Shown here: positions 2,775 to 48,331 of the stretch, piece by piece
Layout of the letters: every line of letters begins with the position of its first letter
Numbering within the stretch: the stretch's first letter is position 1
Origin: Ramazzottius varieornatus
Lineage: Eukaryota; Animalia; Tardigrada
Reading direction: 5' to 3'
DNA: 64,000 bases
NCBI GenBank assembly: GCA_001949185.1
Contig: BDGG01000012.1
Coordinates: 116,973-180,972 of the forward strand
Notes under the pieces: model-generated
Databases searched by the model: none
What the model saw: only the letters and a program-made list of their open reading frames with translations
What the model was told of the DNA's origin: nothing
Program-made: the position numbers and the translations under genes

Positions 2775-4545
2775 ATGGGCCTGAATTGTGGAGCCAAGTT
2801 TGCCAAGTATGATACAGCTTCCGACACCGGAGGGGGAAACTCGGCAAACGAACTTGACAGGATCGATTTCCTAACGGACAAAGCGATTTTGTTTGGAGTT
2901 TGTTTGCCGATCTCCCAGATGTTCCGCGCAATCTAGGCTGATAAGCTTACCTAATGCTTTTTCTACTGTAGGTATGTCCTTTTCCTCTTCAACTTCATAT
3001 TCTTCCTGGGTGGAGCAGCGGTTCTCGGCGTCGGTATCTGGGTTGTGGTAAGTTCGGCTCATTTTCTTTGTGATATCGATCTTGACAAGCAAGGCACCGA
3101 TATTGACATTTTGCAAAAAATTCAACAGGTGGATTCAGGAAGTTACATGAACTTCCTGTCAATAGTTGACGCCAGCGGACAATCCACCACAGTGGCCAGT
3201 AATATTCTGACAGACAACGTAGCCTACGTCAAAACATTAGGCTATGTGGCCATCGGCATTGGCTCTTTCGTTTTCTTGGTTGGGTTCATGGGATGCTGTG
3301 GTGCCTGCAAAGAATGGAGGCCTCTGCTTATCGGCGTAAGTTCCAAGTTCGCTCCACCCCAAATTCATTGAGGCCAAGTCAGCAATTAATCAATGCATTC
3401 TTATCACCGTGCGAGTACAGTAAATAATGATACCGGGAAAGAGGGACCGTATAGTCATGGCTGAGGTTTATATGGCTTATCTAATGCAAAGTCTGACGCC
3501 TTCATTGGACTATCGTAATACCCAATTTACTGTTTGCTCATTCGTCGGAACGGATTTATGAGTTTCGTGTTTGCAGTACGCCATATGTTTAATCATCATC
3601 ATATGCGCGCAAATTGGACTGGGTATCGCCTTCGGAGTGTACAAGCAGCCGGTCCAGGACCAGATCATCAGAGAACTGAGGGTCTGGAATAAGGACTACA
3701 GTGGTGTAGACACCCAGTCAGACAACGGTAAACTGATCATTACTGGTCAGACTAAGAGAGCAGCATTCGGCAATATGTGGACCCAGAATGAAACTTTGGC
3801 TACCAATGGTCTGAACTCCCTGCAGATGTGGGTACGTATCTCGAACATGGACCGTAGCTTTCGAGGTTGAAGTGATGCTCATTTTGCTGATTTCAGCTCG
3901 GGTGCTGCGGAATTGAAGAAGGATCCAACGGCCAACCAAACTTCGCGGGTACCCAGTACGAGTTGCGAGATAGAAATTTTGTCAAACCTTCGACGATGCA
4001 GCCAAAGATACCCGTCTTTTGCTGCAAAATGGAAGATCCCCTGCAGTTGAAACTAGGCAAATACAATACTTGTTTCACCACCCCCGATGATTTCAACTCC
4101 AACAAGAACATTGTAAGTATTAGGCTACGGTTTTTTCGGCAAACAGACTCGGCCAGATCGGCTTCCCAAGTGGCGCACGATATCAGCCAAAATCAATGCA
4201 ACGTGCGCCGCTTGGAAAACGATCTGATCGAGTGTGTTTGCCGAGCTCCCCATTGTCCTTCCATGCACGGAGAAACCCCCGATACAAGAAAAGCAGTAAA
4301 GTCCAGAAGAACACCACGCATTTGCTCTCTTTCAGGGTTGTGTGAGACGAGTGGAGGACTTCGTCAATGGTAACATGCCTCTTGTGATCGGAGTTATGGT
4401 CGGCGTGGGCCTGGTCGAGGTACTCACTCCTCTGATTTTGGCTAAGATCAGCGCATAAAGTTGATATCTGTTATTCTTTTTTTAGCTTATTGGAGTCGTA
4501 ATGGCTTTCTGTTTATGCGGAGCCATCAGCGATAAGCGACATTAG
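2775..4545 (+). CDS. Tetraspanin (multi-exon)
   Basis: Spliced MGLNCGAKFAK|YVLFLFNFIFFLGGAAVLGVGIWVV; GFMGCCGACKE; EC2 with CCG and PVFCC; 4 TM segments; GT-AG introns; TAG at 4543-4545. Confidence 0.9.
2834..2916. mobile_element. Palindromic family A, internally deleted copy (tetraspanin 1 intron)
   Basis: gggaaactcggcaaacgaact...agtttgtttgccgatctccc; outer arms only. Confidence 0.65.
4136..4250. mobile_element. Palindromic family A (tetraspanin 1 intron)
   Basis: tcggcaaacagactcggccagatcggcttcccaagtggcgcacg...cgtgcgccgcttggaaaacgatctgatcgagtgtgtttgccga. Confidence 0.8.
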
Positions 4546-5299
4546 TCGGAGAGACCAAAAGTTTCTAGGGTTCCCGCCAGATGAAGAATTGTCTTCGAAC
4601 GCACCAAATCTTTCCTTTCCGTAAGCAAGCTACATGTTCTTGTATTTTGATCCAGTTTTTGTAAACCAGTGAGGTATATGCATCGCATGCTGTGAAAATT
4701 TCAAACAAAATTTTAATTTTTGAAAACCCTTCCTGTTCTTTCTCGGGATCTAAACGGTCCATCTGTTCAACTAGGACATTTGAGTTTGCACTGGGATAAA
4801 CGTGTGGCTTCTTCTCCTTCTATCCCATCCTGTTACCCACAGTTGAAAGATTTTCTACAATCGGAAAACCCGTTTTTCACGCAATAAAGTGACCCAGTTT
4901 GTCTCTAGTGGAATGTTGAAACTGCATATTTATAGGTGGCACTCGCGATACAGTATTTCGAGCACTGTTAGAGCGAGGTCCTCGGGCGATATGGGAAGCT
5001 CCGTAATACTTGTCGAATGAGTAATTTGACTTCCGGCTACATGGTTTTCAAGTCCCGCGGGCTTCTTTTAGTTCTTGCCCATAGCTCATATCGCAACACG
5101 AGAAAAGACGCAGGCTGGAAATGCTGTTACTGTACGATAGATATTTCTGTTCCCTGATCCTTACCACCAGACTTCGTTGTGGGCTCTTTCGCGATCTGGA
5201 AATTAATTCATGAGTTTTTGAGCACCAAACCACAGCAAGCTGCCCGGAAGGTTTCTTCCATTCACACCGGTGTCGACGTCCGTGCTGAAAACTCGCCGG

Positions 5300-6967
5300 A
5301 TGATGGCACGGGACATGGGTGGTCCCCGCTGTGCGAAGTACGTATCCCATCTTGACTCTGCATGCTCGAACCGGTCTCAATTACACCTTTATACTCCCTA
5401 GGTATTCGCTGTACGGGATCAACATCGTAATTATCATTCTGGCCTGCGTCACGTTGGGAGTGGGTATCTGGATTAGCGTAAGTGGATCTCTCCGATGGTG
5501 GATGCACAGAATTTCTGGTCAGGCATATGATACTAGATCTGTGGGTAGCAAACATAACACCGTCTTCCCTGATTTCTCACCGTTATCTGGGAAATCGAAG
5601 TTGCCGTTATCGCCTTTCTAGTCGGAAGTGTCCCACTTGGTGAGCTCCCTGAATCCATCGGTCAACGTCGATCCATCGGGTCGGGCCTACGTCGATGTGA
5701 CGAACAAGATCAACGATGGTGTGGGACAAGTGCAAACGGTGGCCAACCTGTTGATCACTTCTGGGGTCTTCGCTATTCTAATCGGGGTTCTGGGAATATG
5801 GGCGGCGTATCGGGAGTCGAGAGCTTTGCTAATTACGGTAACAGTTGTCTAATACATTGAACCGTAGAAAAGAGTCGCTGAGGTCCTTCTTAGCTTCACT
5901 TCCCTTGAACAGCGAGGGCGTCGGTACAGTACTCGCATCTCCCTCCATGATTTCTGGCGGCTTAAGCAGCCATGCTACTGATCGAAAACGATGGGCGGAT
6001 AACTTTTTCCAATAATTCTATTTTCTGTTCCAGTATGCGGTTATTTTAATCATCATCGTTTTGCTGGAAATCGGCGCCGGTATCGCTTGGGCCGTTGACA
6101 GGCCGAAGCTCCTCACCAACATCGCCAATGGGTACGAGAACGCAATTGACTCCTATGACTACGTGATGACCACTCGGGACGTCAACAACCGCGTCATAGT
6201 TACTCCGTATCAAACGTACAACAACAACACGGTCCAACCTACCATCTTCATCAATCTCATCCAGACCTGGGTACGAAAATACCATTTGGGAGCTCGGCAA
6301 AGAAGTCGACAAGCTTGTTTCCAAGTGGCGTAAATTCTCATTATCATTGGGCAAGAGCGTGCGCCATCTGGAGAAACGGTCTTGTTAAGTTTGTTTGACA
6401 AAATTTCACTTTTCACGTCTGCAGCCTCGAGCCGGCGGACATCTTTTAGGTGACTCAACGAATAATTTTTTCATTGAAGGTTGGCTGTTGTGGTGGAAGG
6501 TCTGGCTACACGGACTTTCAGAACTCTCCGTACTGGGCGAAGAGCGGTGGAGTACCTCCGGTGTATTGCTGTAAGATGCAGAATACTCGGACGTTGGAAC
6601 TAAAAGACCCGGGCTGTATAAACGTCCGCACGCTGGACAACTCATGGATGGAACAGGTAAGGCCAGCAACAATCTAGAGTGGAAGATTTTTCCGGTTCGA
6701 GCTCGGTACTCAGCTCGTTAACTTCCTTTTCTGCTTTTAGGGTTGCGCACCGAGACTTCGTGCCATGGTCAACCGTAACACACCCACTATCATCGGCGTC
6801 GCCGTCGGAATCGCCATTGTTGATGTAAGTTGTTGGGACTGCCTTGTTCAAAAAATTTAGAATGTGTTTCGTGTTGTAATCACAACCTTCTGCTCTCACA
6901 GCTTTTGGGAATCGGATTCGCATTCTACCAGTATCGTCTCATCTCAGAAGGCTATCGGGCGTTCTAA
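5300..6967 (+). CDS. Tetraspanin (multi-exon), tandem paralog
   Basis: MMARDMGGPRCAK|YSLYGINIVIIILACVTLGVGIWIS; GCCGG and PPVYCCK in EC2; exon layout mirrors the upstream copy; ends YRAF-stop. Confidence 0.88.
6288..6407. mobile_element. Palindromic family A (tetraspanin 2 intron)
   Basis: gggagctcggcaa...ccaagtggcgta...cgtgcgccatctgg. Confidence 0.7.
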
Positions 6968-15906: not shown

Positions 15907-15978
15907 GGGGGCAACCGGGAATTGAACCCGGGACCACCCGCACCCTAAGCGGATATCATACCCCTAGACTATTGCCCC
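15907..15978 (-). tRNA. tRNA-Pro (anticodon AGG)
   Basis: GGGGCAATAGTCTAGGGGTATGATATCCGCTT-AGG-GTGCGGGTGGTCCCGGGTTCAATTCCCGGTTGCCCCC; cloverleaf, A/B boxes, T5 terminator at 15901-15905. Confidence 0.93.
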
Positions 15979-31697: not shown

Positions 31698-33775
31698 TTA
31701 GGGATGAGTAGCTGACCCAAGCTGGAAAGTCTCTTGACTCTCCGTTTTATCAGGTAAACTAACGATAGAAGCTTCACTGGGCTCGGAAATCAAGCTAGGC
31801 GAAATATGTCTAGCCCAGAAAGGTAGCTCAGTCTCAAATTTCCAGCTAGGTCCTTGATACTTCCAGGCATGCAGATCTATGCGTTGGTCTTCGTCCTTGG
31901 GGTCCTCGAACTTGACCCAACATTCTGGGCACTTTGGGTCCACCCATGGGTCGTCGGGTAGCTTGTCCAACTTGAAATGCTTGGTCCGCTGGCATTCTTC
32001 AGGGAAATCAGTAAAGATGTCATTACCTACTGGATCTATCTTGTCTTTCCCAGTGTACAAGGCATTGGCCCCGTACACTGGGTCGTTCACAATCGGGAAA
32101 CCAATATACTGCAACAATAAAAGACACCGTCAACACTGCATTCATGATGCAACGCCATCTCCAATGCTCAGGCCAGAGTGTATCGGAATACTGTTGCCAC
32201 CCAGTTGAATGCTTCCTCGAAACTTCCCACAAATAAAACAGATGGAAGCTCGGCCACAGACTCGATCAGATCATTTTTCAAAGTGGCGCACTTTTCTAGT
32301 GTTTTCGGCTGAGAGCGTGCGCCACTTGGGATCTCAAAAAGATCGCTTTCTGAAAGTGGCGCACGCTTCCAGCCAATAACTTCAGAAACGTACGCGACTT
32401 GGGAGAACGATGTGATCGAGTTTCTTTGCCGAGCGCTCAGATAACTTTTGGTCAAGTTTCTCATTTTACCTGTAAATGGATGCGAATCTGGTGAGTTCGT
32501 CCCGTTAGCGGTTTACATTTCACGATAGAAGTGTTTTTCGCTTCGTCATAGTACAAACTGTGGAACTCGGTAGTGCAAGGCCGTCCAGTGTCCCGCACTT
32601 GGTAGATGCCGGCTCGAGGATTCACACAGTCTATGGGTTCGTTGCAGAGGACCGTCTCCGTCGGGAACCGACCGTGTACTTGAGCCAGGTACTCTTTGCG
32701 AACTACCCGCTCAGTAATCTGGTCGTGGACACTCTGTGCTGCGGAAAGGTTCTTGGCGAAGATCAGCAGACCGGATGTCAACCGATCGAGACGATGCGCC
32801 TACCAGAAAAACATAGTTGAAAATACGAGCACTGTATTCTGGAGAGTAATCGTCATTCGCCAACAAAAACGCTAGTCAAAATTTGGAACTAACGACTCGT
32901 AGGTTCCTTCTTCCGAACTCTGAAGCTAAGATGTATATGACGGAGTTCATGCGGAATCTTCCGCAAGGATGACAAGGAATGGAAGCGGGTTTGTCGATGA
33001 CTAGCATATCATCGGTCTCCGCCACGATTCTAAAACACGACGGGAAGACTATAAAAACTAGGAAACGTGAATTTTTTTTTTCTTACTTAAGAGGTCGAGC
33101 TGTAACGGGACATTCATGCCGGTGGGTGTAATTGGCGATGTAGTCGTTGTCTGGAAAAAGAAAAGAATCACTGCGGTCAGTGAAGACACCGATAGAGTAT
33201 TATTTACTTTTGATTTTGTGGGTGAGTTGCGTTCGAATTCCGTTCACGAAGATGTTGACAGAGTCAGCGCTGATCCTGGCTTCCGTAACGTCTTTGTTGA
33301 CAGCAAAGAACTCATCGCGGAAGATATCCTCAAGCGTTCGACCAAGCCACCTGCCTTTGGCGTACGTCGTCCATGTGAAGTAATATGGCGTCACTTTGCG
33401 CAGACCATTCTCAAAGTAGTACTCGGCGTCAGGAGGTATAATCAGCTCTGTCACCTCCTCCGAAGTAGCTTGTCTCTTTCTACGGAAGGGAACCGTGAGG
33501 TCGGGACCGAGAGGACGCTTGCGACTTGTTATGGACGATGAAGCCGGTGTGGCGTCTTCGGCTGAACTTGAAGGCTTGTCGATCCCAGGTTCGGGACACG
33601 CCGCTACGTCAGGAAGCACGATAGGTTCCGTGACTGGCTCGGGTATGGTCACTGGAAGCGGAGAAGCCGAGGTGGCCATCGAAGACAGGTGACGGGGAAC
33701 GGAAGTCAGTCGGGTAACGGAATGACGGGAAAGATGGAGCAGCTGTTTAGAGAAGGCGAGCGCCCTGCAAAACAT
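31698..33775 (-). CDS. RPUSD2: RluA-family RNA pseudouridine synthase
   Basis: GLRKVTPYYF, KGRW, HRLDRLTSG catalytic motif, TGRTHQIRIHLQ, PIVNDPVY. Confidence 0.9.
32243..32438. mobile_element. Palindromic family A, dimer (RPUSD2 intron)
   Basis: Two aagtggcgcac...cactt/gactt hairpins within one pair of outer arms. Confidence 0.8.
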
Positions 33776-34055
33776 CGAGAACAAGCACGATTTTTCCAGC
33801 TCAAGGATTAAAGCCGCACTTCCGAACTAGTGATCCGCTGTCAGGGAAAACATGATCCACATGAGCACTGAGAAGAAAGCAGGAGGAAACCATTATTCAT
33901 CCGAACTTGCGAAGAGTAAAGACTCGACCGGAAATGACATGGTGTGTTATACATTTCGTAATATCATTACTAATATGTTCAGCACGTAATATGACCTTGC
34001 ACGGTAAATTCCAGCTTTGATTGATTGATTCTAACACTCTGATTAGCACGATGGC

Positions 34056-34461: not shown

Positions 34462-36368
34462 ATGAACGGAAACAGGCAGTTGTCTTTCGCGGCGGCGCTA
34501 GCCGATATTTGCATTCGGGACGAGCTGGAGCCCGAATATGAGCTGATCAAAGTGGAAGGACCATGCCACGATCCCGTCTTCGTCATGAGAGGACGTGTGG
34601 GCGAATACTCCGCCGAAGGCAGAGGACAAAAAAAGCAGACAGCAAAGCAAGAAGCTGCCAAACAGATCTTGCTGCAGATGGGAGAGCTGAAGCTGGAAGA
34701 CTTGAAACAGCTGGAGAAAACTGAGACGTACGAGACAGCCAAAGTCATCGGGAATATCGTCGATGAGTCTTTCAACTCGTTTCGCCATGGTACAGGATTC
34801 ACACCGTACGTTGATTTCTCTGACAAACTAGTACCTGAACTCACTATCATGATGTTTCAGAATTGACGAGGACAAAGAGAAGAAGAAGTGCGGATACACA
34901 CCAATTCCTGAAGCAAATTCAGTCAATCCACTGGGAGAGTAAGTGCCACTTCCTTTCGCGCAGTGATATCATAAGTTATTGCTTATTGGTCCAGCAAATC
35001 TTTCATAATGCGCGAGTTTGTCGGGGTCGTTTCTCCTGAATCAGCTGACACCCGTTGTCTTGCATGAACCTGCATACTGCGGTACGATCAAAATTCCACG
35101 TCCCGTACGCGAGAGGATGTTACGGGCATCCGTGTGCCATTCTTCTTCGACGACTTTTCGGTTCAAATAAATTTTCGAGTATGGCTTGTGTGGAGGTAAT
35201 CCTGGGCTTAAGTTGATCTTTTTTCCCCAGCTTGATTGAGATGAGCCTAATCATGGGTTGGCCTCATCCTCGTGTCCTGGATGAACAACGAACCGGTCCC
35301 GCTCACGATCCTCGCTTCACAGTCTCCTGCATCTTCCACAAGTTCAAGACCTTCGCCACTTCCCGGTCCAAGAAGGACGCCAAACGTTTGGCGGCGGCTG
35401 ACATGCACGAGAAGATGCGATACCAGTCTGACATCATGTACAAGTACTCACTGCGAACCGGGAAACCTTTGGTATCATTTTCAACTTACATTTTCCCTCC
35501 CAACAATCTACAAACATCCTACTTTTTCTTGCAGGACGTTTCTGCAATCCACACTGATGACGCCGATTCGTTAGCCGATTCTCGTGCCGCCTTTGCTTGT
35601 CCCGCAGACTTTTGCTACAGTGGAGTACCCAGCGTCCTCCGAGTTGCTCAGTCGCACACCATCGACCTGTTGCTCAGAGAGATCAAGAACATTGAGGAGA
35701 TTGCTACTCCAGAAAGTGTTCTACGTAACGTCACTTCCGAATGCAGCTTCCAGTTCTGGTTCGAAACCCTGTGCGAAGATATGATATGGAGACCTGTCGA
35801 AGACGGTACATCTGTTGTTCCCCCACCCAAGCCTTTCTCCATGCCCTTCCACTCGGATTCCACTTCTCCGAACGAGCTCACCGACGACGAAGACCTCCAC
35901 GAAGAGTCTTCAGGTGAGAAATTTATTTTCATCGTTTACCAATCTTCGATCGGGAAGTCGGCAAATGGACGGACATAATCGTTACCTCATGCGGCGCACA
36001 CTTGCATGCAATGACGACGAGAACGTGGGCCACTTACGAAATCGGCAAGATCAGTTTCATCAGTGGCGCACCCATGCAGCCACCAGCGCCGGAAATGTGC
36101 GCCACTTGACGTGATGATCGTTGAAGTCTAGTTTGCCGGTCTCCCAAATCCTTACGCTTTATTTCGCTTCACAGACTCCGCTACCGTTCCTGCTCCTTCA
36201 ACCCTAGCTCCTGCCCACGATATTTTCTCCTCCATGTGTGTGGTCAAGTTTCCGATCAAGACGCCTGTTCAAGTTCTGGGCTACGGCATCACTGTGGAAG
36301 ACGCACGCCACGCTGCCGCCAGCAACGCTTTGAGATACACTTACCTGATGCTACGTAAAGACTTCTAA
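34462..36368 (+). CDS. Triple dsRBD protein, Loquacious/TRBP/PACT-like
   Basis: EGPCHDPVF...KKQTAKQEAA; GPAHDPRF...SKKDAKRLAA; third domain VLGYGITVEDARHAAASNALRY. Confidence 0.8.
35951..36145. mobile_element. Palindromic family A, dimer (dsRBD gene intron)
   Basis: gggaagtcggcaaa...agtggcgcac...gtgcgccactt...tttgccggtctccc. Confidence 0.7.
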
Positions 36369-36714
36369 CGCAACCAGCTGTCTTATTCATTTCTCTTTAC
36401 CAATCTTCGGCCCGTCTTGTTCCTCTTGCGACTGTTATTCAGTGTTTTATCTTTTATCGTGAAGCAGTTTTGGCATATAACATAGCTAGCGAGTTCAAGA
36501 CTCTAATCTCCATTTTCGTTTCAGACTTGGTACTTCTTTTCGTAACCAACAAAAAGAAACTCTAAAATTCTGAACAGAAATTCAGAGGGGATAAAACATG
36601 CTCGGATCAGCCTGTCTTCTCGATGTCCAGCAGACTCTAGCCTAGAAGAAAAAAAGCGAATGTCAGTCACAAGTCACACCAGCCCTTCGGAAGATGCAGA
36701 GAGAGTTTACAAAA

Positions 36715-36772
36715 TCAGACTGACTTATCTAGTCGTCATTATTTTTCACGATAGCGATTCTGAAAACATCCT
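36715..36772 (-). ncRNA. Box C/D snoRNA, 28S guide (yeast snR50/Gm867-like site)
   Basis: C AGGATGT, D' GTGA, C' TGACGA, D CTGA; guide tcagaatcgcta complementary to 28S UAGCGAUUCUGA. Confidence 0.65.
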
Positions 36773-36930
36773 TTGCCACAAACTGAACACTCAAATCCAC
36801 AAAACCAACTCACCTTTCGAAAGAACCTCCACATTCAAAAAGAGCTGAAGCAAGTATCCCTCTGCAAAAATGGAAGACAAGTCACATCAGTCCCTCTCGA
36901 CAAGGTAACCGTAACTTGATGCAAGTCTTC

Positions 36931-36988
36931 TCAGAAAACAACTACGTAATCACAACACTCATTTGAGGGAAAATTACTCTTTCATCAC
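36931..36988 (-). ncRNA. Box C/D snoRNA, probable 28S guide
   Basis: C GTGATGA, D' ATGA, C' GTGATTA, D CTGA; guide aattttccctca pairs with 28S UGAGGGAAAGUU (1 G-U). Confidence 0.7.
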
Positions 36989-37157
36989 CGGAGCCACACA
37001 CTTGAACACCGAGCTGGAACCCGACTCACCCAGATTTCGAAGAAGACTCCAAAGTCTCTCACTTCTGCTCCAGTCCGTACCTGCAAAAACACAAACGACT
37101 TGTGGAGTCTGTCACGAGCGCATCGTCGACAAAGTATTCAAAACTTCGAAGTTAAAA

Positions 37158-37232
37158 TCAGCAAGATTTCTCCACACGAGGTGTGAGCAAATGGGTACTA
37201 GCTCTTAAGAAGGATCTATTGGAAAACATCAT
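37158..37232 (-). ncRNA. Box C/D snoRNA, U62/snR41-like (18S Am590/Am541 site)
   Basis: C ATGATGT, D CTGA; 13-nt guide tccaatagatcct complementary to 18S AGGAUCUAUUGGA, followed by a degenerate D' (CTTA). Confidence 0.78.
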
Positions 37233-37395
37233 CGAACTTCACCAAAGTCTTTCGGTCTAGTTCCTTAAAACCTCACCTTACTCCACCGATCGACTCCAGC
37301 CAGCTCCTCCACTACACAACCTGCGAAAAGACAAACACCCGTTAGCAAGAGCCTCGCGAAAGCCGCAACTTGTCTACTAAGAGTGTCGGGATGCA

Positions 37396-37458
37396 TCAGC
37401 GAGCTGGATTTGTGTCGTCAGGTACTCAGACTAACAGGGAAACTAGTTTACTCATCAC
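37396..37458 (-). ncRNA. Box C/D snoRNA, double 28S guide (copy b)
   Basis: C GTGATGA, D' CTGA, C' TGACGA, D CTGA; guides ttccctgttagt and aatccagctc target 28S ACUAAUAGGGAA and GAGCUGGGUU. Confidence 0.85.
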
Positions 37459-37651
37459 TCACACCGATATTCGAAGAGCCTTCCCCCAAATCCCCACTGC
37501 AAGTCGAACTTACCTCAGCTACTCAACGCTAAACGGAGGAATCGCCAGCCCCAAGTAACTTCTGCAAAAACACAATCCAAATTACAGAAGACTACTACCT
37601 AAAGCCAACTCTTGCGGTATTGCGGTACTATTCTCCATCGGTATCGGTCTG

Positions 37652-37716
37652 TCAGCGAGCTGGATTTGTGTCGTCAAGTGTTCTCAGACTAATAGGGAAA
37701 CTGTTTTGCTCATCAC
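37652..37716 (-). ncRNA. Box C/D snoRNA, double 28S guide (copy a; D guide snR69/Cm2948-like)
   Basis: Paralog of 37396-37458; D' guide ttccctattagt perfectly complementary to 28S ACUAAUAGGGAA. Confidence 0.87.
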
Positions 37717-37881
37717 TCACACCTGCATTCTCAAAGAACTCTACACACGAAGCCAGCCTCACCTTGATCTTCCATCGCCTCAAGGATGCCGTTGCCCTCC
37801 AAAGCAATATCTGCAAAGACACATAGAACAGTAGTAACCAAAAATCACCACCGGTGAGATTCCTCAGAGAATCACAATGTT

Positions 37882-37943
37882 TCAGATTAGGTAAGGAAGA
37901 GTGTCGCCACATTTCATCTGAACTAGAAGCAATCATTCATCAT
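37882..37943 (-). ncRNA. Box C/D snoRNA, 28S guide
   Basis: C ATGATGA, D' ATGA, D CTGA; D guide ttccttaccta pairs with 28S UAGGUAAGGGA (1 G-U). Confidence 0.75.
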
Positions 37944-38107
37944 ACCAGCACAGAGAACCCCGAGTTCCTCAATATGAAACTCACCTTACATCCAAAGGCC
38001 CATCGATCGCGACGCTATCAAGGTTGCCACACCCAAAGTCTGAAAACACAATACCATGTTTAAGTTATCCACAACGACATTTCGAGAAAAAAGTTCCTCC
38101 AGTCAAG

Positions 38108-38164
38108 TCAGACCCAAAGGTTGTAATCACACTTCAGAACGAGTAGGAGAAAGTTTGTCATCCT
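38108..38164 (-). ncRNA. Box C/D snoRNA, 28S guide
   Basis: C AGGATGA, D' CTGA, C' GTGATTA, D CTGA; guide ctcctactcgt complementary to 28S ACGAGUAGGAG. Confidence 0.78.
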
Positions 38165-38321
38165 ATTTCATCAAGGAAACAACGGCGCGTTAAAACAGTC
38201 TGACACCTACCTCCACTTTCCGCCCAGGCTCTCCATTCAACCACTTCCAACCTGCAACAGGCGACCGAAAGCCGATTTTCAATTACCAAACCAATTCGCT
38301 CTATGGCGGATATCAGACGAG

Positions 38322-38381
38322 TCAGAGAGAGAGCGAAACATGATATCAACAATGAATTCAGTCGGAAGCCTCAATCATCAT
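38322..38381 (-). ncRNA. Box C/D snoRNA, target not assigned
   Basis: C ATGATGA, D' CTGA, D CTGA, 70 nt from the 3' splice site. Confidence 0.65.
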
Positions 38382-38495
38382 CCCCGTCAACCTCCAAACT
38401 ATCTTCGATTTTTACCTGTCCAGAGATCCTCTAGACAGTTCTCTCATAGTTTTGAGCTTTTCGAAATTCCGTCTGGCACTCCTACAAGAAAAGAA

Positions 38496-38641
38496 CCTTC
38501 GCTTGACTATATCAGCGCGTATTGAGGCAGACATGATCAGAAACGATCCATCCTACCACACCCGATCGTTCTGACTAGACTTTACTCTGCTTCCCGCGAC
38601 GACCTCGGGCCACAACAGGACCATTGGTGCTTAAGGGAAGC
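38496..38641 (-). ncRNA. Possible H/ACA-type intronic RNA
   Basis: Hairpin gcttccc/gggaagc (38589-38641), then H box AGAGTA, then hairpin tcagaacgatc/gatcgtttctga; ACA box not clear. Confidence 0.35.
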
Positions 38642-38788
38642 CTTCGTTGCTCAAACACCCAACAGATACACCAGCTCCGTCAACCTACCATTCAACACAG
38701 GACGCGGTCCACATCCCAGCTCTAGAAGCAACCAAATTGTAAAACACTACCGCACACAACTCTGGATTTCTCTTCAAACGGCAAAAAG

Positions 38789-38856
38789 TCAGACAATTTC
38801 ATCCGAGTCCTTTTATCCACATATCTTCAGCCTGGGGCGGAACATTTCAACATCAT
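38789..38856 (-). ncRNA. Box C/D snoRNA, U31/snR67-like (28S P-loop Gm)
   Basis: C ATGATGT, D' CTGA, D CTGA; guide atgttccgccccag versus 28S CUGGGGCGGUACAU; D'+5 falls on the second G. Confidence 0.85.
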
Positions 38857-39014
38857 TCAACCTTCTAGCTCATCTTCACTGAATATTCTCTCAAACCTGC
38901 CTTCAATTTCTTCGCCTTCATCCAAGACCTTCTTTCCAAATCGATACTGCAAATACAGAAAAGATTCAGTCATGATTACAAACAGTGCCTGTTCACGCAT
39001 GATTCAAATCAGAC

Positions 39015-39084
39015 TCAGATGGAATTATTCCAACGACACTCATCAACATTAGTCAGTTCGCCCGTCGCAGGGTATCGTCATCGA
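39015..39084 (-). ncRNA. Box C/D snoRNA, U43/snR70-like (18S Cm1703/Cm1639 site)
   Basis: C TCGATGA, D' CTGA, C' TGATGA, D CTGA; guide gcgacgggcg complementary to 18S CGCCCGUCGC. Confidence 0.83.
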
Positions 39085-39246
39085 AAGATCTCAAGTGAAC
39101 AATTACAACACAAATCTTAAGCTGACCTTCTCTAAAAGCCCGTCGTAATGTGACCGCAAGTGTCCATCTCGAACCTGAAAGATAACAGCCAGTCAACCAC
39201 ATACAACAGACGCTCTCACGCTCATTACCGTATGTCAGCTGTCTTG

Positions 39247-39315
39247 TCAGAAACACGGACCAACGTGTAATGTTTGGTCAACAAGGAAGATTTAGTATTG
39301 CAGGAAGATCATCAT
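39247..39315 (-). ncRNA. Box C/D snoRNA, U18-like (28S Am)
   Basis: C ATGATGA, D CTGA; 13-nt guide ttggtccgtgttt complementary to 28S AAACACGGACCAA. Confidence 0.88.
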
Positions 39316-39493
39316 TCATAGACCTCATCAAAGAATTTCAAACAACGACAGTGCTGACTTGACTTACCATCAGGCAAAACGAGGATCGTTTCCGGCAACT
39401 TAAGCCCATCCGTTTCCTGCAAAAGACCCAACCCCATGTCTCAGAAACGCAGCAGTCCAAAGTCACTTTGACAGAAAAGCGTTCGTACGAAAA

Positions 39494-39554
39494 TCAGAAA
39501 ACCAGTATCGGCAGCAATTATACGATTGAAAAGCACTTATGAGTTGATCATCCC
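39494..39554 (-). ncRNA. Box C/D snoRNA, 28S guide in the U26/U81 target region
   Basis: C GGGATGA, D CTGA; guide aagtgcttttcaa versus 28S UUGAAAAG(C/A)ACUU; D' degenerate. Confidence 0.6.
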
Positions 39555-39735
39555 TCTTCCATTCCCCAGAAAAAAAACCGGCATAGACTACAACTTGGCT
39601 TACGTTCAAGTCTTGCTCGTCAACCCCAGTCCATCGAACGAAGGCCGAGACCGTTCCTTTCTGAAACCAAGGAGCTCTTGTCATTGTCAAAACCTGTCGC
39701 ATAACTGCTAGTTTTCCGAAATGTTTCCACTGGCA

Positions 39736-39811
39736 TCAGAAATTTATCAAGTTATGTAATCAGTTTCGTCTCATACGGGGAAAGAAGACAAAAATATTGG
39801 TTTCTCATCCG
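39736..39811 (-). ncRNA. Box C/D snoRNA, snR190/SNORD12-like (28S)
   Basis: C CGGATGA, D' ATGA, C' TGATTA, D CTGA; 14-nt guide gtcttctttccccg complementary to 28S CGGGGAAAGAAGAC. Confidence 0.85.
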
Positions 39812-39979
39812 TCACCTCCCAGGAAAGGGTCAACACAAGCCATCACACTCACCTGCACGCTCCTGTTTCTCGTCTCAGCCCACCACACGCGCTTCCTAGA
39901 CTTCATGCAAAACAGCCAAAAATCAAGCCAGATCACGACAAAAATCCCACGAAATGCTTCAGAAGATTCTCACAAAGCT

Positions 39980-40049
39980 TCAGACAAAACAGAACAGACA
40001 ACTGTTGTTAACAGCAGCAATGGTCAGTCGGGGACATTCTTGTCATCCT
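39980..40049 (-). ncRNA. Box C/D snoRNA, probable 18S guide
   Basis: C AGGATGA, D' CTGA, D CTGA; guide gaatgtccccg pairs with 18S CGGGGGCAUUC (1 G-U). Confidence 0.68.
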
Positions 40050-40215
40050 TGAAACCGCCAAACCTTCACCAAACCAAGCTCAAGAAAAGCTCACCTTTGT
40101 CTGCCGCAGAGGACGAGTTATCGTAGTCATTCGTCACCCCTTAAAAAGAACAAGAAGACTTCAGCAATAATTACTGGGTGCGAAGACGTCGGAAAATCAT
40201 GGAAAATCTAATGAG

Positions 40216-40267
40216 TCAGGCTGGTAGTGTCAACAATGATTTCTGAAGCAGAACTGTTTTTCATCCC
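40216..40267 (-). ncRNA. Candidate box C/D snoRNA, boundaries and target uncertain
   Basis: C GGGATGA and CTGA 76 nt from the 3' splice site; an alternative D box lies at 40161; a palindromic element sits just upstream. Confidence 0.45.
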
Positions 40268-40290
40268 GTCAGGAAGATTTAGTATAAACA

Positions 40291-40410
40291 GGATGCCGGT
40301 AAACGATGTCCCGCGAAGGTTTTTCTAGTGGCGTACGCTTACTTTGCTAATGCCCGAGAGCGTGCGTCACTTGGGAAAACGATCTGTGCGAATTCATTTG
40401 CCGACGTCCC
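40291..40410. mobile_element. Palindromic family A (snoRNA host gene intron)
   Basis: agtggcgtacgct...agcgtgcgtcacttgggaaaacgatctg...tttgccgacgtccc. Confidence 0.7.
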
Positions 40411-40549
40411 AGATGTACAAAAATTTCCCACAATTTACCTCGTCATGCTTTGCCTCCAAGAAACCATGGTCCACTTCTGTAAAAGAGACCAGAAAGTAGC
40501 CGCAAGAAAAAGCGAGAATTTTGTCGCTAACTGTTTGTAAATTTTCGAG

Positions 40550-40608
40550 TCAGCGTTGGTGAAGTAAGCATCAAATCGATCAGTCCATCTAGTAGCTTTT
40601 TACATCAT
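40550..40608 (-). ncRNA. Box C/D snoRNA, 28S guide
   Basis: C ATGATGT, D' CTGA, C' TGATGC, D CTGA; 13-nt guide agctactagatgg complementary to 28S CCAUCUAGUAGCU. Confidence 0.83.
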
Positions 40609-40799
40609 CCAAAATTCTTGTAATCATCTCTCTGCTCTAGGCGAAATGCAGTGAACTTACCGTGGATTACTGGAGCTTCGCAAATTTGTTGGAACTTCAC
40701 CAGAATCCGCCTGCCATAATTCGGAAATAAATTAATATCACGAACTAAACTTAGCGATGTCTGTCTACACTGGAAATTGAATTAACCGAGGGATCGCCA

Positions 40800-40866
40800 T
40801 CAGATGAAGAAATGAGACGTCACAACAAATCAGACATATGCTTGTCAAAGATTTTCTGATCATCAC
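40800..40866 (-). ncRNA. Box C/D snoRNA, U27/snR74-like (18S Am27/28) with a second U36-like 28S guide
   Basis: C GTGATGA, D' CTGA, D CTGA; guide gacaagcatatg versus 18S CAUAUGCUUGUC; D guide atttcttca versus 28S UGAAGAAAU. Confidence 0.88.
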
Positions 40867-41058
40867 GGAAGAGCGTTCCTTCGTTCAAGAACAAGCTTCT
40901 GAAACAAAGCGAGACTTACTGCGGACGGTGCCCTAGTTGAAACTTGGAGAGGAAGTGGGATACGTCATCCTGCGCAACCAAGCCGCTCCTGAAAATAATC
41001 GATTCAGTTCTGTTTCTGATCCAGCAAAATCAAGAAACTTTTTTCTAGGATGGTCTTT

Positions 41059-41114
41059 TCAGTCAAGCTTGTCGTCACTTTCTATCGGACAATGTGATTT
41101 CATTTGAGCATCAT
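41059..41114 (-). ncRNA. Box C/D snoRNA, 28S guide
   Basis: C ATGATGC, D' CCGA, C' GTGACGA, D CTGA; guide gaaatcacattg complementary to 28S CAAUGUGAUUUC. Confidence 0.8.
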
Positions 41115-41289
41115 TAAAAAGCAACCGAACAAAAAGTCCAGCCGAATAACTGCATGATTCTTACGTATGCGGTTTGCTCTGTCAATATTCATCTCTCGCG
41201 GCTATCCAGACCTAGAAATCAACATAAGTAAGAGCTTTACAGAATTGAAGGTCACATTGAGAGCTGCCGAAAGGGTTCTGGAGAGTGGT

Positions 41290-41354
41290 TCAGTGAAACT
41301 AATCATCAAGAAGGCAGAAAACTGACTGTCAGACGAACGAGACAAACTCATCAA
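41290..41354 (-). ncRNA. Box C/D snoRNA, 18S Am1383-type guide (U30-like)
   Basis: C TTGATGA, D' CTGA, C' TTGATGA, D CTGA; guide gtctcgttcgt versus 18S ACGAACGAGAC; external stem gggttctggagag/ctctcaagaaccc. Confidence 0.85.
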
Positions 41355-41579
41355 CACCGGCAACCTCTCAAGAACCCGGTCGCTAATTCTAGTCTAGCAT
41401 ACAACAGATTTCCCTTACCAATTTCCGGCGAGGTCGTATTGTATCTCCTGCAAAGCCTCCAGCTGGACCTGAGAAGTGAAAGGCACAGTTACTCGTACAT
41501 AAAGTAAAAATGGGGCCGGTTGCGCAACCGTCTTTCTCAAGCGAAATGTCGGTTAGGAGGATCACGAATCCGGCAGCAA

Positions 41580-41639
41580 TCAGATTGAGATTAGTTTGTC
41601 CTCAATGTTTCTTTGGAACAGGTCTGTGTTGATCATCAT
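41580..41639 (-). ncRNA. Box C/D snoRNA, U25/snR56-like (18S Gm1490/Gm1428 site)
   Basis: C ATGATGA, D CTGA; guide cacagacctgtt versus 18S AACAGGUCUGUG; perfect 10-bp external stem atccggcagc/gctgccggat. Confidence 0.88.
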
Positions 41640-41830
41640 GCGCTGCCGGATCTCTCCTCGACGACGAAAGCAATCTCGTATGTCGCAGCTTACCTTCGTC
41701 AGGCTGTCGTCGTGATGCAGCATTCCTTTCTCCGTTTCCTGCGCTTCTCGTCAAGCTGGGACGTGGAGAACAACCTGAAATAGACAGCATGTACGCGTAC
41801 TACGCGTATGTTCTCAAGCGAGACCACAAG

Positions 41831-41842
41831 TTTTGAAGAGCC
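41831..41842 (-). promoter_or_regulatory. TCT/5'TOP-like initiator of the snoRNA host gene
   Basis: ggCTCTTCaaaa, similar to gaCTTTTCaaaa (48616-48621, RpL26) and ttCTCTTCgaag (51207-51212, RpL23A). Confidence 0.5.
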
Positions 41843-42297
41843 AAAGTCTGCGGAGAAGAAAACTGGAAAACTGGAAAACTGGAAATGCCGATTTGGCTCA
41901 CTTGGGCCGGGACGACTGGAAAATTTTTCAGCCGTTCGGCCGTTCCGATTTCAGTTTCAAATCTCAAGAATACGGAACAATAAGAACGTTCAGAACAGTC
42001 AGCTGAGTAAGAGAAAGCGCATGATGCTTTGATTGCCCAGTCTGTTGATTGACTGGAACTGAAATTTTGATCTGGCGTTTCCTGAGCTGTTCATTTTTTG
42101 AGTTTTAAATTTTCCATAATTTTTGTCTTCCCCCAAAAACCATCCTTCCTGCGCCGTTACTCGCTCGACTCCAGATATTATTGGTTAAGTGGTGCATTTG
42201 AGCAACAGCCGTGACAGGTTGCGTGCGTAGCAGGGTTCGCTCTTCGTATTTTGCAGGTTGAGTGTTTGCGATCGGAGCTACCATCTGATTCCTCAGC

Positions 42298-45549: not shown

Positions 45550-45858
45550 CCATTGCCGAAGTATTGTGGTAAAAGTGGCAAATCAATCAATCGACAATCC
45601 GGGCGGGATCGNNNNNNNNNNNNNNNNNNNNNNNNNNNNNNNNNNNNNNNNNNNNNNNNNNGTACAATGGAAAAGCGGATTGAAGATCTTTTGCTCAATA
45701 ACGGTTTGCGAACCAAGTGGTGATTCTGAGATAACTGGATGTTGGGCTGTAATTTCCAGTAAAGTACTAATCAAGACCTCTGATTGTACCGCCTTACGAC
45801 CCCGCCCGGATTGTCGATTGATTGATTTGCCACTTTTACAACAATACTTCGGCAATGG
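45550..45858. mobile_element. TA-flanked MITE family B, copy 2 (TIR >60 bp, contains an N gap)
   Basis: ccattgccgaagtattgtggtaaaagtggcaaatcaatcaatcgacaatccgggcggg is inverted at ~45800-45858. Confidence 0.85.
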
Positions 45859-47606: not shown

Positions 47607-48331
47607 TTACGCAGAAGCTTTCTCGGTGGTTTCGACTTCTTCAGTGTATTTGCCTTTGAGGCCATCTTTCCTTTCTCGTCTTGCCCTGGCGCGACGTTCG
47701 ATCGATCTTTTTCGGTCGTTATCAAGCTTTGGTTTGACGATGACCACCTACAAACGAAGCAGCTCAATCAAAGAATGATCATAAAACGATCACGGCAGGC
47801 AACAGCAAAACTGGGTCGGCAAACGAACCCCACAAAATCGTTTCCCAAGTGGCGCACACTTTCAGCCAGCAACACGGAAAAAGTGCGCCAGTTGGAGAAC
47901 CAAACTCGACCAGACTGATTTTCCAAGTGACACACACTTCCAGCCAATATTTCCCGAAACGAGCGCCCTTTAGGAAAGCAATCTGGTCGAGTCTGTTTGC
48001 CGAGCTCTCAACTGTTACCTACATTGGAAGGATGAACACCAACGGGAACAGTGGCACCGTTTGCCTTCTCGCGGGTTATTCTTTCAATGTGTATTACAAA
48101 CTTCTTTCGGTAGACGGCGATGACTTTCCCAACTTGCTGTCCCTTGTAATGTCCACGGACGATCTGAACTTCGTCATCTTTGCGGATGGCCAGCGATCGT
48201 ACACCGTGTTTGCCTCGTTGATCCTTTGATAGAGGAGCGCTCATCAGCTTGCGGCGAACATGAGAAGGAGAATTGTAGTATCGCTTCCTGTTCTTGCGAC
48301 GCGAGCTGGTGACGAAAGGATTCAGCTTCAT
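47607..48331 (-). CDS. RPL26: 60S ribosomal protein L26 (uL24)
   Basis: [35 protein letters not shown]...VGVHPSN|[13 protein letters not shown]. Confidence 0.97.
47813..48009. mobile_element. Palindromic family A, dimer (RPL26 intron)
   Basis: tcggcaaacgaac...cccaagtggcgcac...gtgcgccagttgg...ggtcgagtctgtttgccgagctc. Confidence 0.8.

Follow-up and report, generated by a model that had tools for sequence, protein, structure and literature searches.

The closest described counterparts of the locus reported here are dedicated host genes of small nucleolar RNAs (snoRNAs). In human and mouse, SNHG1 (UHG; the host of U22 and U25-U31) is a non-coding gene that carries eight snoRNAs, with box C/D snoRNAs in consecutive introns, and GAS5, with ten C/D snoRNAs, combines short exons lacking a conserved open reading frame (ORF) with functional RNAs in its introns; GAS5 RNA is subject to nonsense-mediated decay because a small upstream ORF in it is followed by stops. 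Seven Drosophila Uhg genes (Uhg1-5, 7, and 8) have no recognizable ORF and are dedicated to snoRNA production, having up to 16 introns with a single snoRNA each, as in Uhg1, which yields 16 snoRNAs (PMC4430873). The snoRNA clusters I-V of Neurospora crassa are also UHG-like hosts, containing only short ORFs of 159-267 bp (PMC2780460). Here, we describe a locus on the minus strand of a 64,000-nucleotide stretch of the genome of the tardigrade Ramazzottius varieornatus (contig BDGG01000012.1, positions 116,973 to 180,972; hereafter the window, in whose coordinates features are given), which is very probably a snoRNA host gene of the UHG/SNHG/GAS5/Uhg type, dedicated to this role and most likely non-protein-coding.

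We favor this assignment because each intron holds one snoRNA, the guides match the rRNA of the species itself, the distance to the 3' splice site is fixed, two exons have stops in every frame, and the exons are not conserved in a paralogous host that shares some of the snoRNAs. The preliminary description of this DNA had recognized the architecture of UHG/SNHG1 and GAS5, and each prediction for a host gene of this type that we could examine at the sequence level was borne out. It had also ranked the locus, with about 20 guides, above SNHG1 and GAS5; while the snoRNA number is indeed larger, the novelty was overrated, given that a fly Uhg gene holds up to 16. Genes of this type are well documented in flies, vertebrates, and fungi, and the tardigrade locus is a large addition to them that involves no new mechanism. 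In the literature that we searched, no description of tardigrade modification-guide snoRNAs or of their host genes was found.

Exon-intron organization of the locus

Our model of the host gene, built from the minus-strand sequence, divides it into 22 exons and 21 introns, each intron bearing one snoRNA, and extends over 36480..41850, both ends being approximate. All 21 introns start with GT, mostly as GTAAG or GTGAG, and end in a pyrimidine tract followed by CAG, TAG, or AAG. The internal exons measure 33-69 nucleotides (nt), so that the sizes and canonical GT/AG sites given in the preliminary description hold exactly in the 22-exon model. On the transcribed strand, the exons are G-rich and T-poor (T 24%), whereas the introns are T-rich (T 33%). 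Intron lengths fall between 164 and 225 nt, with the exception of intron 6, which is 299 nt long because a dispersed repeat, a miniature inverted-repeat transposable element (MITE), is inserted in its 5' half (40291..40416). This repeat has ∼45 genome-wide matches of 73-92% identity (genome-wide searches, here and below, covered the R. varieornatus assembly of 55,842,812 bases in 200 contigs) and carries inverted 8-mer arms, GTGACGCA and TACGCCAC, that are 27 nt apart. It lies on the 5' side of the snoRNA, and 76 nt still separate the D box of this intron from the 3' splice site. An extra exon within intron 6, suggested by a GTAAGC donor at 40342, was rejected, as the stretch in question is the dispersed repeat.

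Exon 1 (41694..41850; 5' end provisional) contains the first ATG, which opens a 58-codon ORF that stops in exon 3. Pyrimidine tracts at 41852-41862 and 41835-41840, near this exon, are possible TCT/terminal oligopyrimidine (TOP)-like starts. Three tandem copies of CCAGTTTT (41848-41886, minus strand) stand directly upstream of a pyrimidine tract, in what is likely the promoter/start region. The internal exons that follow are exon 2 (41419..41468; 50 nt), exon 3 (41165..41211; 47 nt), exon 4 (40920..40988; 69 nt), exon 5 (40661..40710; 50 nt), exon 6 (40439..40476; 38 nt), exon 7 (40095..40139; 45 nt), exon 8 (39853..39895; 43 nt), exon 9 (39604..39660; 57 nt), exon 10 (39368..39416; 49 nt), exon 11 (39127..39174; 48 nt), exon 12 (38897..38946; 50 nt), exon 13 (38689..38721; 33 nt), exon 14 (38416..38481; 66 nt), exon 15 (38211..38251; 41 nt), exon 16 (37985..38039; 55 nt), exon 17 (37763..37810; 48 nt), exon 18 (37514..37561; 48 nt), exon 19 (37277..37320; 44 nt), exon 20 (37030..37080; 51 nt), and exon 21 (36814..36861; 48 nt). 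The last exon, exon 22 (36480..36641), has a provisional 3' end, and a canonical AATAAA signal is absent from it.

Box C/D snoRNAs and their placement in the introns

A single box C/D snoRNA resides in each of 20 of the 21 introns. The C-to-D span is 52-76 nt, in agreement with the preliminary description, which had placed C and D boxes about 50-75 nt apart in 20 of 21 introns and had seen frequent D'/C' boxes; internal D' and C' boxes are indeed present in many of these snoRNAs. The GAUG core of the C box is kept in all 20, with at most two mismatches to RUGAUGA, and the D box is an exact CUGA in 20 of 20. Both signals are confined to one strand and far exceed chance expectation: the minus strand has 13 copies of TGATGA, where the remainder of the window predicts 1.9, and 16 composite C...D loci, where 0.7 would be expected; the plus strand has neither. 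A terminal stem of at least 5 bp within the 12-nt flanks is found in 14 of the 20 snoRNAs, compared with 46% in mismatched flanks. In the neighboring introns 17 and 18, similarity is limited to the snoRNA part, where the two copies are 89% identical.

The snoRNAs keep regular distances from the splice sites: the median distance between the end of the D box and the 3' splice site is 74 nt, with 19 of 20 snoRNAs falling between 67 and 90 nt, and the C box starts a median of 46 nt from the 5' splice site. Such distances have been described as important for the processing of intronic snoRNAs, with 41-60 nt found on the 5' side elsewhere, and those observed here agree with the ones reported for intronic snoRNAs in other species (PMC2780460). 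A regular spacing of snoRNAs would also suit a tandem array, that is, a polycistronic cluster of the plant or yeast type, from which endo- and exonucleases release the snoRNAs with no splicing involved and in which our exons would be mere spacers. We consider this highly unlikely: a good donor and a polypyrimidine-YAG acceptor are present in the right order at all 21 spacers, the base composition of the exons differs from that of the introns, and the same donor/acceptor layout recurs at a paralogous locus (see below). Moreover, the 67-90-nt constraint between D box and acceptor only makes sense with splicing-coupled processing.

Guide pairing with the rRNA of the same species

As targets, we used the 18S, 5.8S, and 28S rRNAs from the rDNA unit of the R. 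varieornatus genome itself, and the positions in the small-subunit (SSU) and large-subunit (LSU) rRNAs follow its own numbering. The minus strand of the locus contains 13 exact antisense rRNA matches of at least 12 nt, where the window background predicts ∼1.6, and its plus strand contains none. Counted by snoRNA, an exact antisense match of at least 10 nt is found in 17 of 20, one of at least 11 nt in 15 of 20, and one of at least 12 nt in 12 of 20, whereas the three control orientations (rRNA taken as sense, reversed, or complement-only) gave 0-5, 0-2, and 0 of 20, respectively. The preliminary description had proposed 2'-O-methylation guides for rRNA and had named a failure to pair with the species' own rRNA as the outcome that would speak against them; what we find is pairing with the species' own 18S and 28S rRNAs, beside D or D' boxes, in the 15 snoRNAs that pass the 11-nt threshold. 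Only 0-2 nt separate the guide matches from the CUGA or CUGA-like box (D or D') that follows them, a spacing that places the fifth paired nucleotide under fibrillarin. When both strands of the 64-kb window were scanned for a C box and a D box accompanied by an exact antisense match of at least 11 nt, 15 loci were returned, all of them in this gene and on the minus strand; none was found outside the gene on either strand of the window.

In total, the pairing predicts ∼21 2'-O-methylation sites (7 in the SSU and 14 in the LSU). Three of these sites are uncertain by 1-2 nt, because the three D' boxes concerned are themselves uncertain. The predictions are clustered in places. The sites targeted by the snoRNAs of introns 20, 9, and 14 are spaced just 10-27 nt from one another within LSU 364-404 (domain I), and the snoRNAs of introns 16, 17, and 18 have two guides each, for neighboring sites.

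The following snoRNAs, all on the minus strand, are directed to the SSU. The intron 1 snoRNA (41568..41651), which is U25/snR56-like and has an 11-bp terminal stem, pairs through its D' guide with SSU 1437-1448 (predicted Gm1441), and this guide is identical to that of the Rfam families snR56 (25.7 bits) and DdR1 (31.3 bits). The intron 2 snoRNA (41284..41358), with C, D', C', and D boxes, employs its D' guide on SSU 1330-1340 (predicted Am1334). The SNORD27/snR74-like snoRNA of intron 4 (40799..40871) pairs with SSU 25-36 (predicted Am28), gives the best Rfam match of the locus (SNORD27; 39.3 bits, E 2.4e-4), and is 85% identical to its paralogue. In intron 7 (39975..40054), where the D box is ambiguous (39983 or 39962), the D' guide matches SSU 882-892 with one G:U pair (predicted Gm885). 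The intron 11 snoRNA (39005..39090) has a 10-nt guide for SSU 1654-1663, with a predicted Cm1656 in the decoding-center CGCCCGUCGC stretch. Finally, the SNORD62/snR41-like snoRNA of intron 19 (37147..37241; D' = CUUA) shows a 13-nt exact match inside a 24-nt duplex with SSU 534-557 (predicted Am543), and its guide equals the SNORD62 consensus (24.9 bits).

The remaining C/D snoRNAs are directed to the LSU. The intron 3 snoRNA (41054..41120; D' = CCGA) has a 12-nt guide for LSU 2560-2571 (predicted Um2563), and the intron 5 snoRNA (40539..40617) a 13-nt D' guide for LSU 1163-1175 (predicted Um1166). The intron 6 snoRNA (40212..40270) is snR61/SNORD38-like, carries a guide identical to that of snR61 (25.8 bits) that covers LSU 1379-1389 (predicted Am1383), and has a paralogue. 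Guides of 14 nt are present in intron 8 (39733..39815; LSU 2771-2784, predicted Gm2774; paralogue 87% identical) and in intron 9 (39487..39562; LSU 373-386), the predicted site of the latter, near A377, being uncertain by 1-2 nt because its D' box is degenerate. The U18-like snoRNA of intron 10 (39239..39318) pairs through its D guide with LSU 835-847 (predicted Am839) and is 92.5% identical to its paralogue. The SNORD31-like snoRNA of intron 12 (38782..38867) pairs with LSU 3017-3030 with one mismatch (predicted Gm3020) through a guide that matches SNORD31 (19.3 bits). The intron 14 snoRNA (38316..38388) has a 15-nt D guide for LSU 390-404 (predicted Am394), and the intron 15 snoRNA (38104..38178) a 12-nt D' guide for LSU 1620-1631 (predicted Am1624). 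Two weaker guides in intron 16 (37878..37948) match the neighboring segments LSU 2213-2222 and 2225-2235 (predicted sites 2216 and 2227). The snoRNAs of introns 17 (37652..37723) and 18 (37396..37465) are tandem duplicates, and both are predicted to act on LSU Am3335 (D' guide in intron 17) and Cm3349 (D guide in intron 17). In intron 20 (36925..36994; D' = AUGA), a 12-nt guide matches LSU 364-375, with a predicted site near G367, and in intron 21 (36704..36784), where a degenerate C box (AGGAUGU) is accompanied by a 9-bp terminal stem, a 12-nt guide matches LSU 1101-1112, with a predicted site at 1102-1104.

With E-value reporting, 17 of the 19 weak Rfam matches of the locus belong to C/D families, all of them on the minus strand, and in five cases (SNORD27, snR56/DdR1, snR61, SNORD62, and SNORD31) the guide is identical or nearly identical to the family consensus. 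The comparison with Rfam that the preliminary description had put forward supports the C/D assignment and the five guides, whereas it yields no match in the locus at a gathering threshold. Since the scores are below those thresholds, we name the snoRNAs "X-like" rather than as members of a family. The weak matches to SNORD24 (intron 5), SNORD59 (intron 20), SNORD12 (intron 18), and snR51 (intron 3) were disregarded, as their targets disagree or their E-values are ∼1-10. Several other predicted targets presumably coincide with conserved methylated positions, namely those guided by U18, U43/snR70 (the decoding-center C), U24/U76, U30, and U26.

Several additional pairings and elements were considered. 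The D-side second guides of introns 4 and 5 were taken to be non-functional, having near-background scores and no conservation in the paralogue, and an apparent complementarity between the intron 10 C-box region and the 3' end of the 18S rRNA (SSU 1805-1820), which is likewise not conserved in the paralogue, was rejected as a chance match. Intron 10 also contains a second element (39283-39306, minus strand), with the core CTGCAATACTAAATCTTCC, that is fully conserved in the paralogue (L005:4553-4576; see below for this locus); it has no rRNA complement and no genome-wide complement with two or fewer mismatches. A 15-nt piece of this element is found again just upstream of the intron 6 snoRNA (∼40272-40286).

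An H/ACA-type snoRNA in intron 13

The preliminary description had noted one intron without C/D boxes. This is true of intron 13, but the intron is not left unexplained: it holds an element (38505..38641, minus strand) which, by its predicted layout, is an H/ACA-type snoRNA, and because of it all 21 introns carry a snoRNA (20 C/D and 1 H/ACA). A genome search with the locus, followed by local BLAST, revealed that a 136-nt block of this intron (38510-38645) has a counterpart of 89% identity on contig C1, in the paralogous locus. Its predicted fold consists of a hairpin, an H box (AGAGUA), a second hairpin, and then AUA, and the similarity ends 3 nt later. No H/ACA family of Rfam matched intron 13, and a search with its pocket gave no convincing rRNA target; the best candidate, LSU U3324, would form 4+6 Watson-Crick pairs at a distance of 14 in both copies, with a near-chance score.

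A paralogous host on contig C1

A second multi-snoRNA host with the same exon/intron layout is located on contig C1 (C1:7579000-7581200, corresponding to positions 3500-5700 on the plus strand of our locus L005). It contains counterparts of the snoRNAs of introns 4, 5, 6, 8, 10, and 13, in the same order and ∼240 nt apart, each inside a GT-AG intron. The snoRNAs of the two hosts are 78-93% identical, and the similarity falls to noise a few bases beyond the boxes. Guides are retained selectively: the intron 4 and intron 5 snoRNAs and their paralogues have the D' guide alone in common, those of introns 8 and 10 both guide regions. By contrast, when the exons of the two hosts were compared one by one, no similarity was found, either as DNA or as peptide. 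Since the snoRNAs are shared in the absence of exon similarity, selection acts on the contents of the introns, and we regard this comparison of two sequences as direct evidence that the introns are the part carrying the selected function. The paralogue continues with other C/D candidates, which have weak Rfam matches to ceN109 (5069-5144) and snoR442 (5331-5392) in L005.

Counter-evidence and the coding potential of the host RNA

A number of observations weigh against our assignment. No match of the locus reaches its Rfam gathering score, the best one, SNORD27, attaining 39.3 bits against the required 52. A number of the C and D' boxes are degenerate, among them CGGAUGA, AGGAUGU, CCAA, and CGUA; the terminal stems are modestly above the mismatched control (mean 5.75 bp versus 4.5 bp), and the guides of introns 7, 11, and 16 are near background strength. 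In intron 13, the H/ACA box reads AUA in the window copy, as opposed to ACA in the paralogue. Lastly, the longest ORF of the spliced model, at 121 codons, exceeds most shuffled controls (P = 0.012 for mononucleotide and P = 0.064 for exon-order shuffles). The low Rfam scores and the degenerate boxes could be taken to indicate a chance pattern or a decayed relic, made up of motif-like sequences or of pseudo-snoRNAs without a present function. This explanation is scarcely credible in view of the strand-specific enrichments, which are 7- to 20-fold above background, and of the guides, which have been kept between the paralogues while their flanks decayed.

The long ORF bears on a different alternative, in which the host is protein coding, the 121-residue product of exons 10-17 is made, and the snoRNAs ride along, as they do in ribosomal-protein genes. 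In favor of this, the ORF is longer than those of 98.8% of the mononucleotide shuffles and 93.6% of the exon-order shuffles. It starts, however, at 39409 in exon 10, ∼500 nt into the RNA and behind the upstream 58-codon ORF, and ends in exon 17; the G-rich and T-poor composition of the exons by itself reduces the number of stop codons in them. Furthermore, exons 3 and 18 are closed in all three frames, the preliminary description having already reported this for the exon at 37514-37561 (exon 18), and the joined spliced model, which is ∼1.25 kb long with provisional ends, contains 11-20 stops per frame. The exons also do not resemble those of the paralogous host as DNA or peptide, although the snoRNAs are 78-93% identical, and the 121-amino-acid ORF is not conserved there; the peptides of individual exons (10-21 amino acids) are too short for a family search. 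We therefore judge a coding function to be quite unlikely, and the host RNA is most likely non-protein-coding, although it may encode a micropeptide. Both this status and the existence of a single spliced transcript are what we infer from the features of the DNA.

Proposed biogenesis and comparison with known hosts

In the model that we propose, RNA polymerase II would make one minus-strand precursor of ∼5.4 kb, and splicing would join the 22 micro-exons into a probably short-lived RNA of ∼1.25 kb that lacks any long or conserved ORF. By analogy with the family, the 21 introns would be debranched and trimmed by exonucleases to protein-protected cores, giving 20 C/D snoRNAs and 1 H/ACA snoRNA. 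The C/D snoRNAs, which can pair with 18S and 28S rRNA through the 10-15-nt guides seen in their sequences, would then guide methylation by fibrillarin to whichever rRNA nucleotide faces the fifth guide position counted upstream from the D or D' box. In this way, the gene would supply guides for ∼21 sites and may add one pseudouridine guide; its functional payload would be the introns, with the exons serving only for splicing.

Among the known hosts, the Drosophila Uhg genes share with the tardigrade locus the absence of a recognizable ORF (in the fly) and the presence of one snoRNA per intron, and both animals belong to the Ecdysozoa. The tardigrade locus differs in having 21 loaded introns, none of them empty, and one H/ACA snoRNA among the C/D snoRNAs. 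In addition, Myc/E-box control is known for the fly Uhg genes, whereas CACGTG (the Myc E-box) does not occur within ∼600 nt upstream of the tardigrade host gene. The Neurospora clusters resemble our locus in their intronic C/D snoRNAs and in the similar distances of these to the splice sites, but these fungal clusters are far smaller and have been shown to undergo alternative splicing (PMC2780460).

The resemblance to human and mouse SNHG1 extends to the guides, as those of the tardigrade locus match Rfam SNORD27 and SNORD31 as well as the U25 equivalents snR56 (yeast) and DdR1 (Dictyostelium), and the snoRNAs of introns 2 and 14 target positions which we take to be those guided by U30 and U26. 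The two hosts differ in their load, with 8 snoRNAs in SNHG1 and 21 here, and most of the other guides (U18-, U38-, and U62-like) are found in human in different, mostly protein-coding, hosts. GAS5 has a different snoRNA content, and the small upstream ORF followed by stops is a feature that it has in common with the tardigrade locus. The partial overlap of the guides with the SNHG1 set is suggestive of an old linkage. It raises the idea, which we regard as doubtful, that both genes descend from an ancestral bilaterian "UHG" in which equivalents of U25, U27, U30, U31, and perhaps U26 have been linked since the common ancestor of tardigrades and vertebrates; the exon sequence may then have been fully turned over, and the gene may have grown to 21 introns by the capture and duplication of snoRNAs. 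If this were true, the linkage would have been kept for >500 million years by intron content alone.

On our reading of the locus as a snoRNA host gene, ∼5.4 kb of apparently empty tardigrade genome would gain a function, with 21 snoRNA genes and ∼21 predicted rRNA methylation sites. For comparison, 61 Nm (2'-O-methylation) sites have been mapped in Drosophila rRNA (PMC11014333), and the number predicted here, all from one transcription unit, amounts to about a third of these. Two hosts that share six snoRNAs and no exon sequence also constitute a natural experiment on selection. Further, a single deletion would eliminate ∼20 guides, of which six have a backup in the paralogous host, offering a handy test of the need for rRNA methylation in an extremotolerant animal.

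Neighboring features of the window

On the 3' side of the host gene, a gene at 31698-33784 (minus strand) resembles an RluA-type pseudouridine synthase, as judged by eye from ORF translations, and a gene at 34462-35978 (plus strand) encodes a protein with a double-stranded RNA-binding domain (Pfam PF00035). The latter is RvY_15400, to which the predicted protein matches with 90% identity over 92% of the query, and its orthologues are BV898_18439 in Hypsibius exemplaris and LOC129593898 in Paramacrobiotus metropolitanus. That both 3' neighbors are RNA-related is probably a coincidence. An ORF at 48008-48331, which shares the minus strand with the host gene and lies ∼6 kb upstream of it, resembles by eye, through a KOW-like motif, the first coding exon of ribosomal protein L26. 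An assembly gap at ∼45610-45660, a run of N, shows up as X when the ORFs of either strand are translated. In the whole window, an Rfam gathering score is reached only by a transfer RNA gene at 15907-15978 (minus strand; 55.1 bits).

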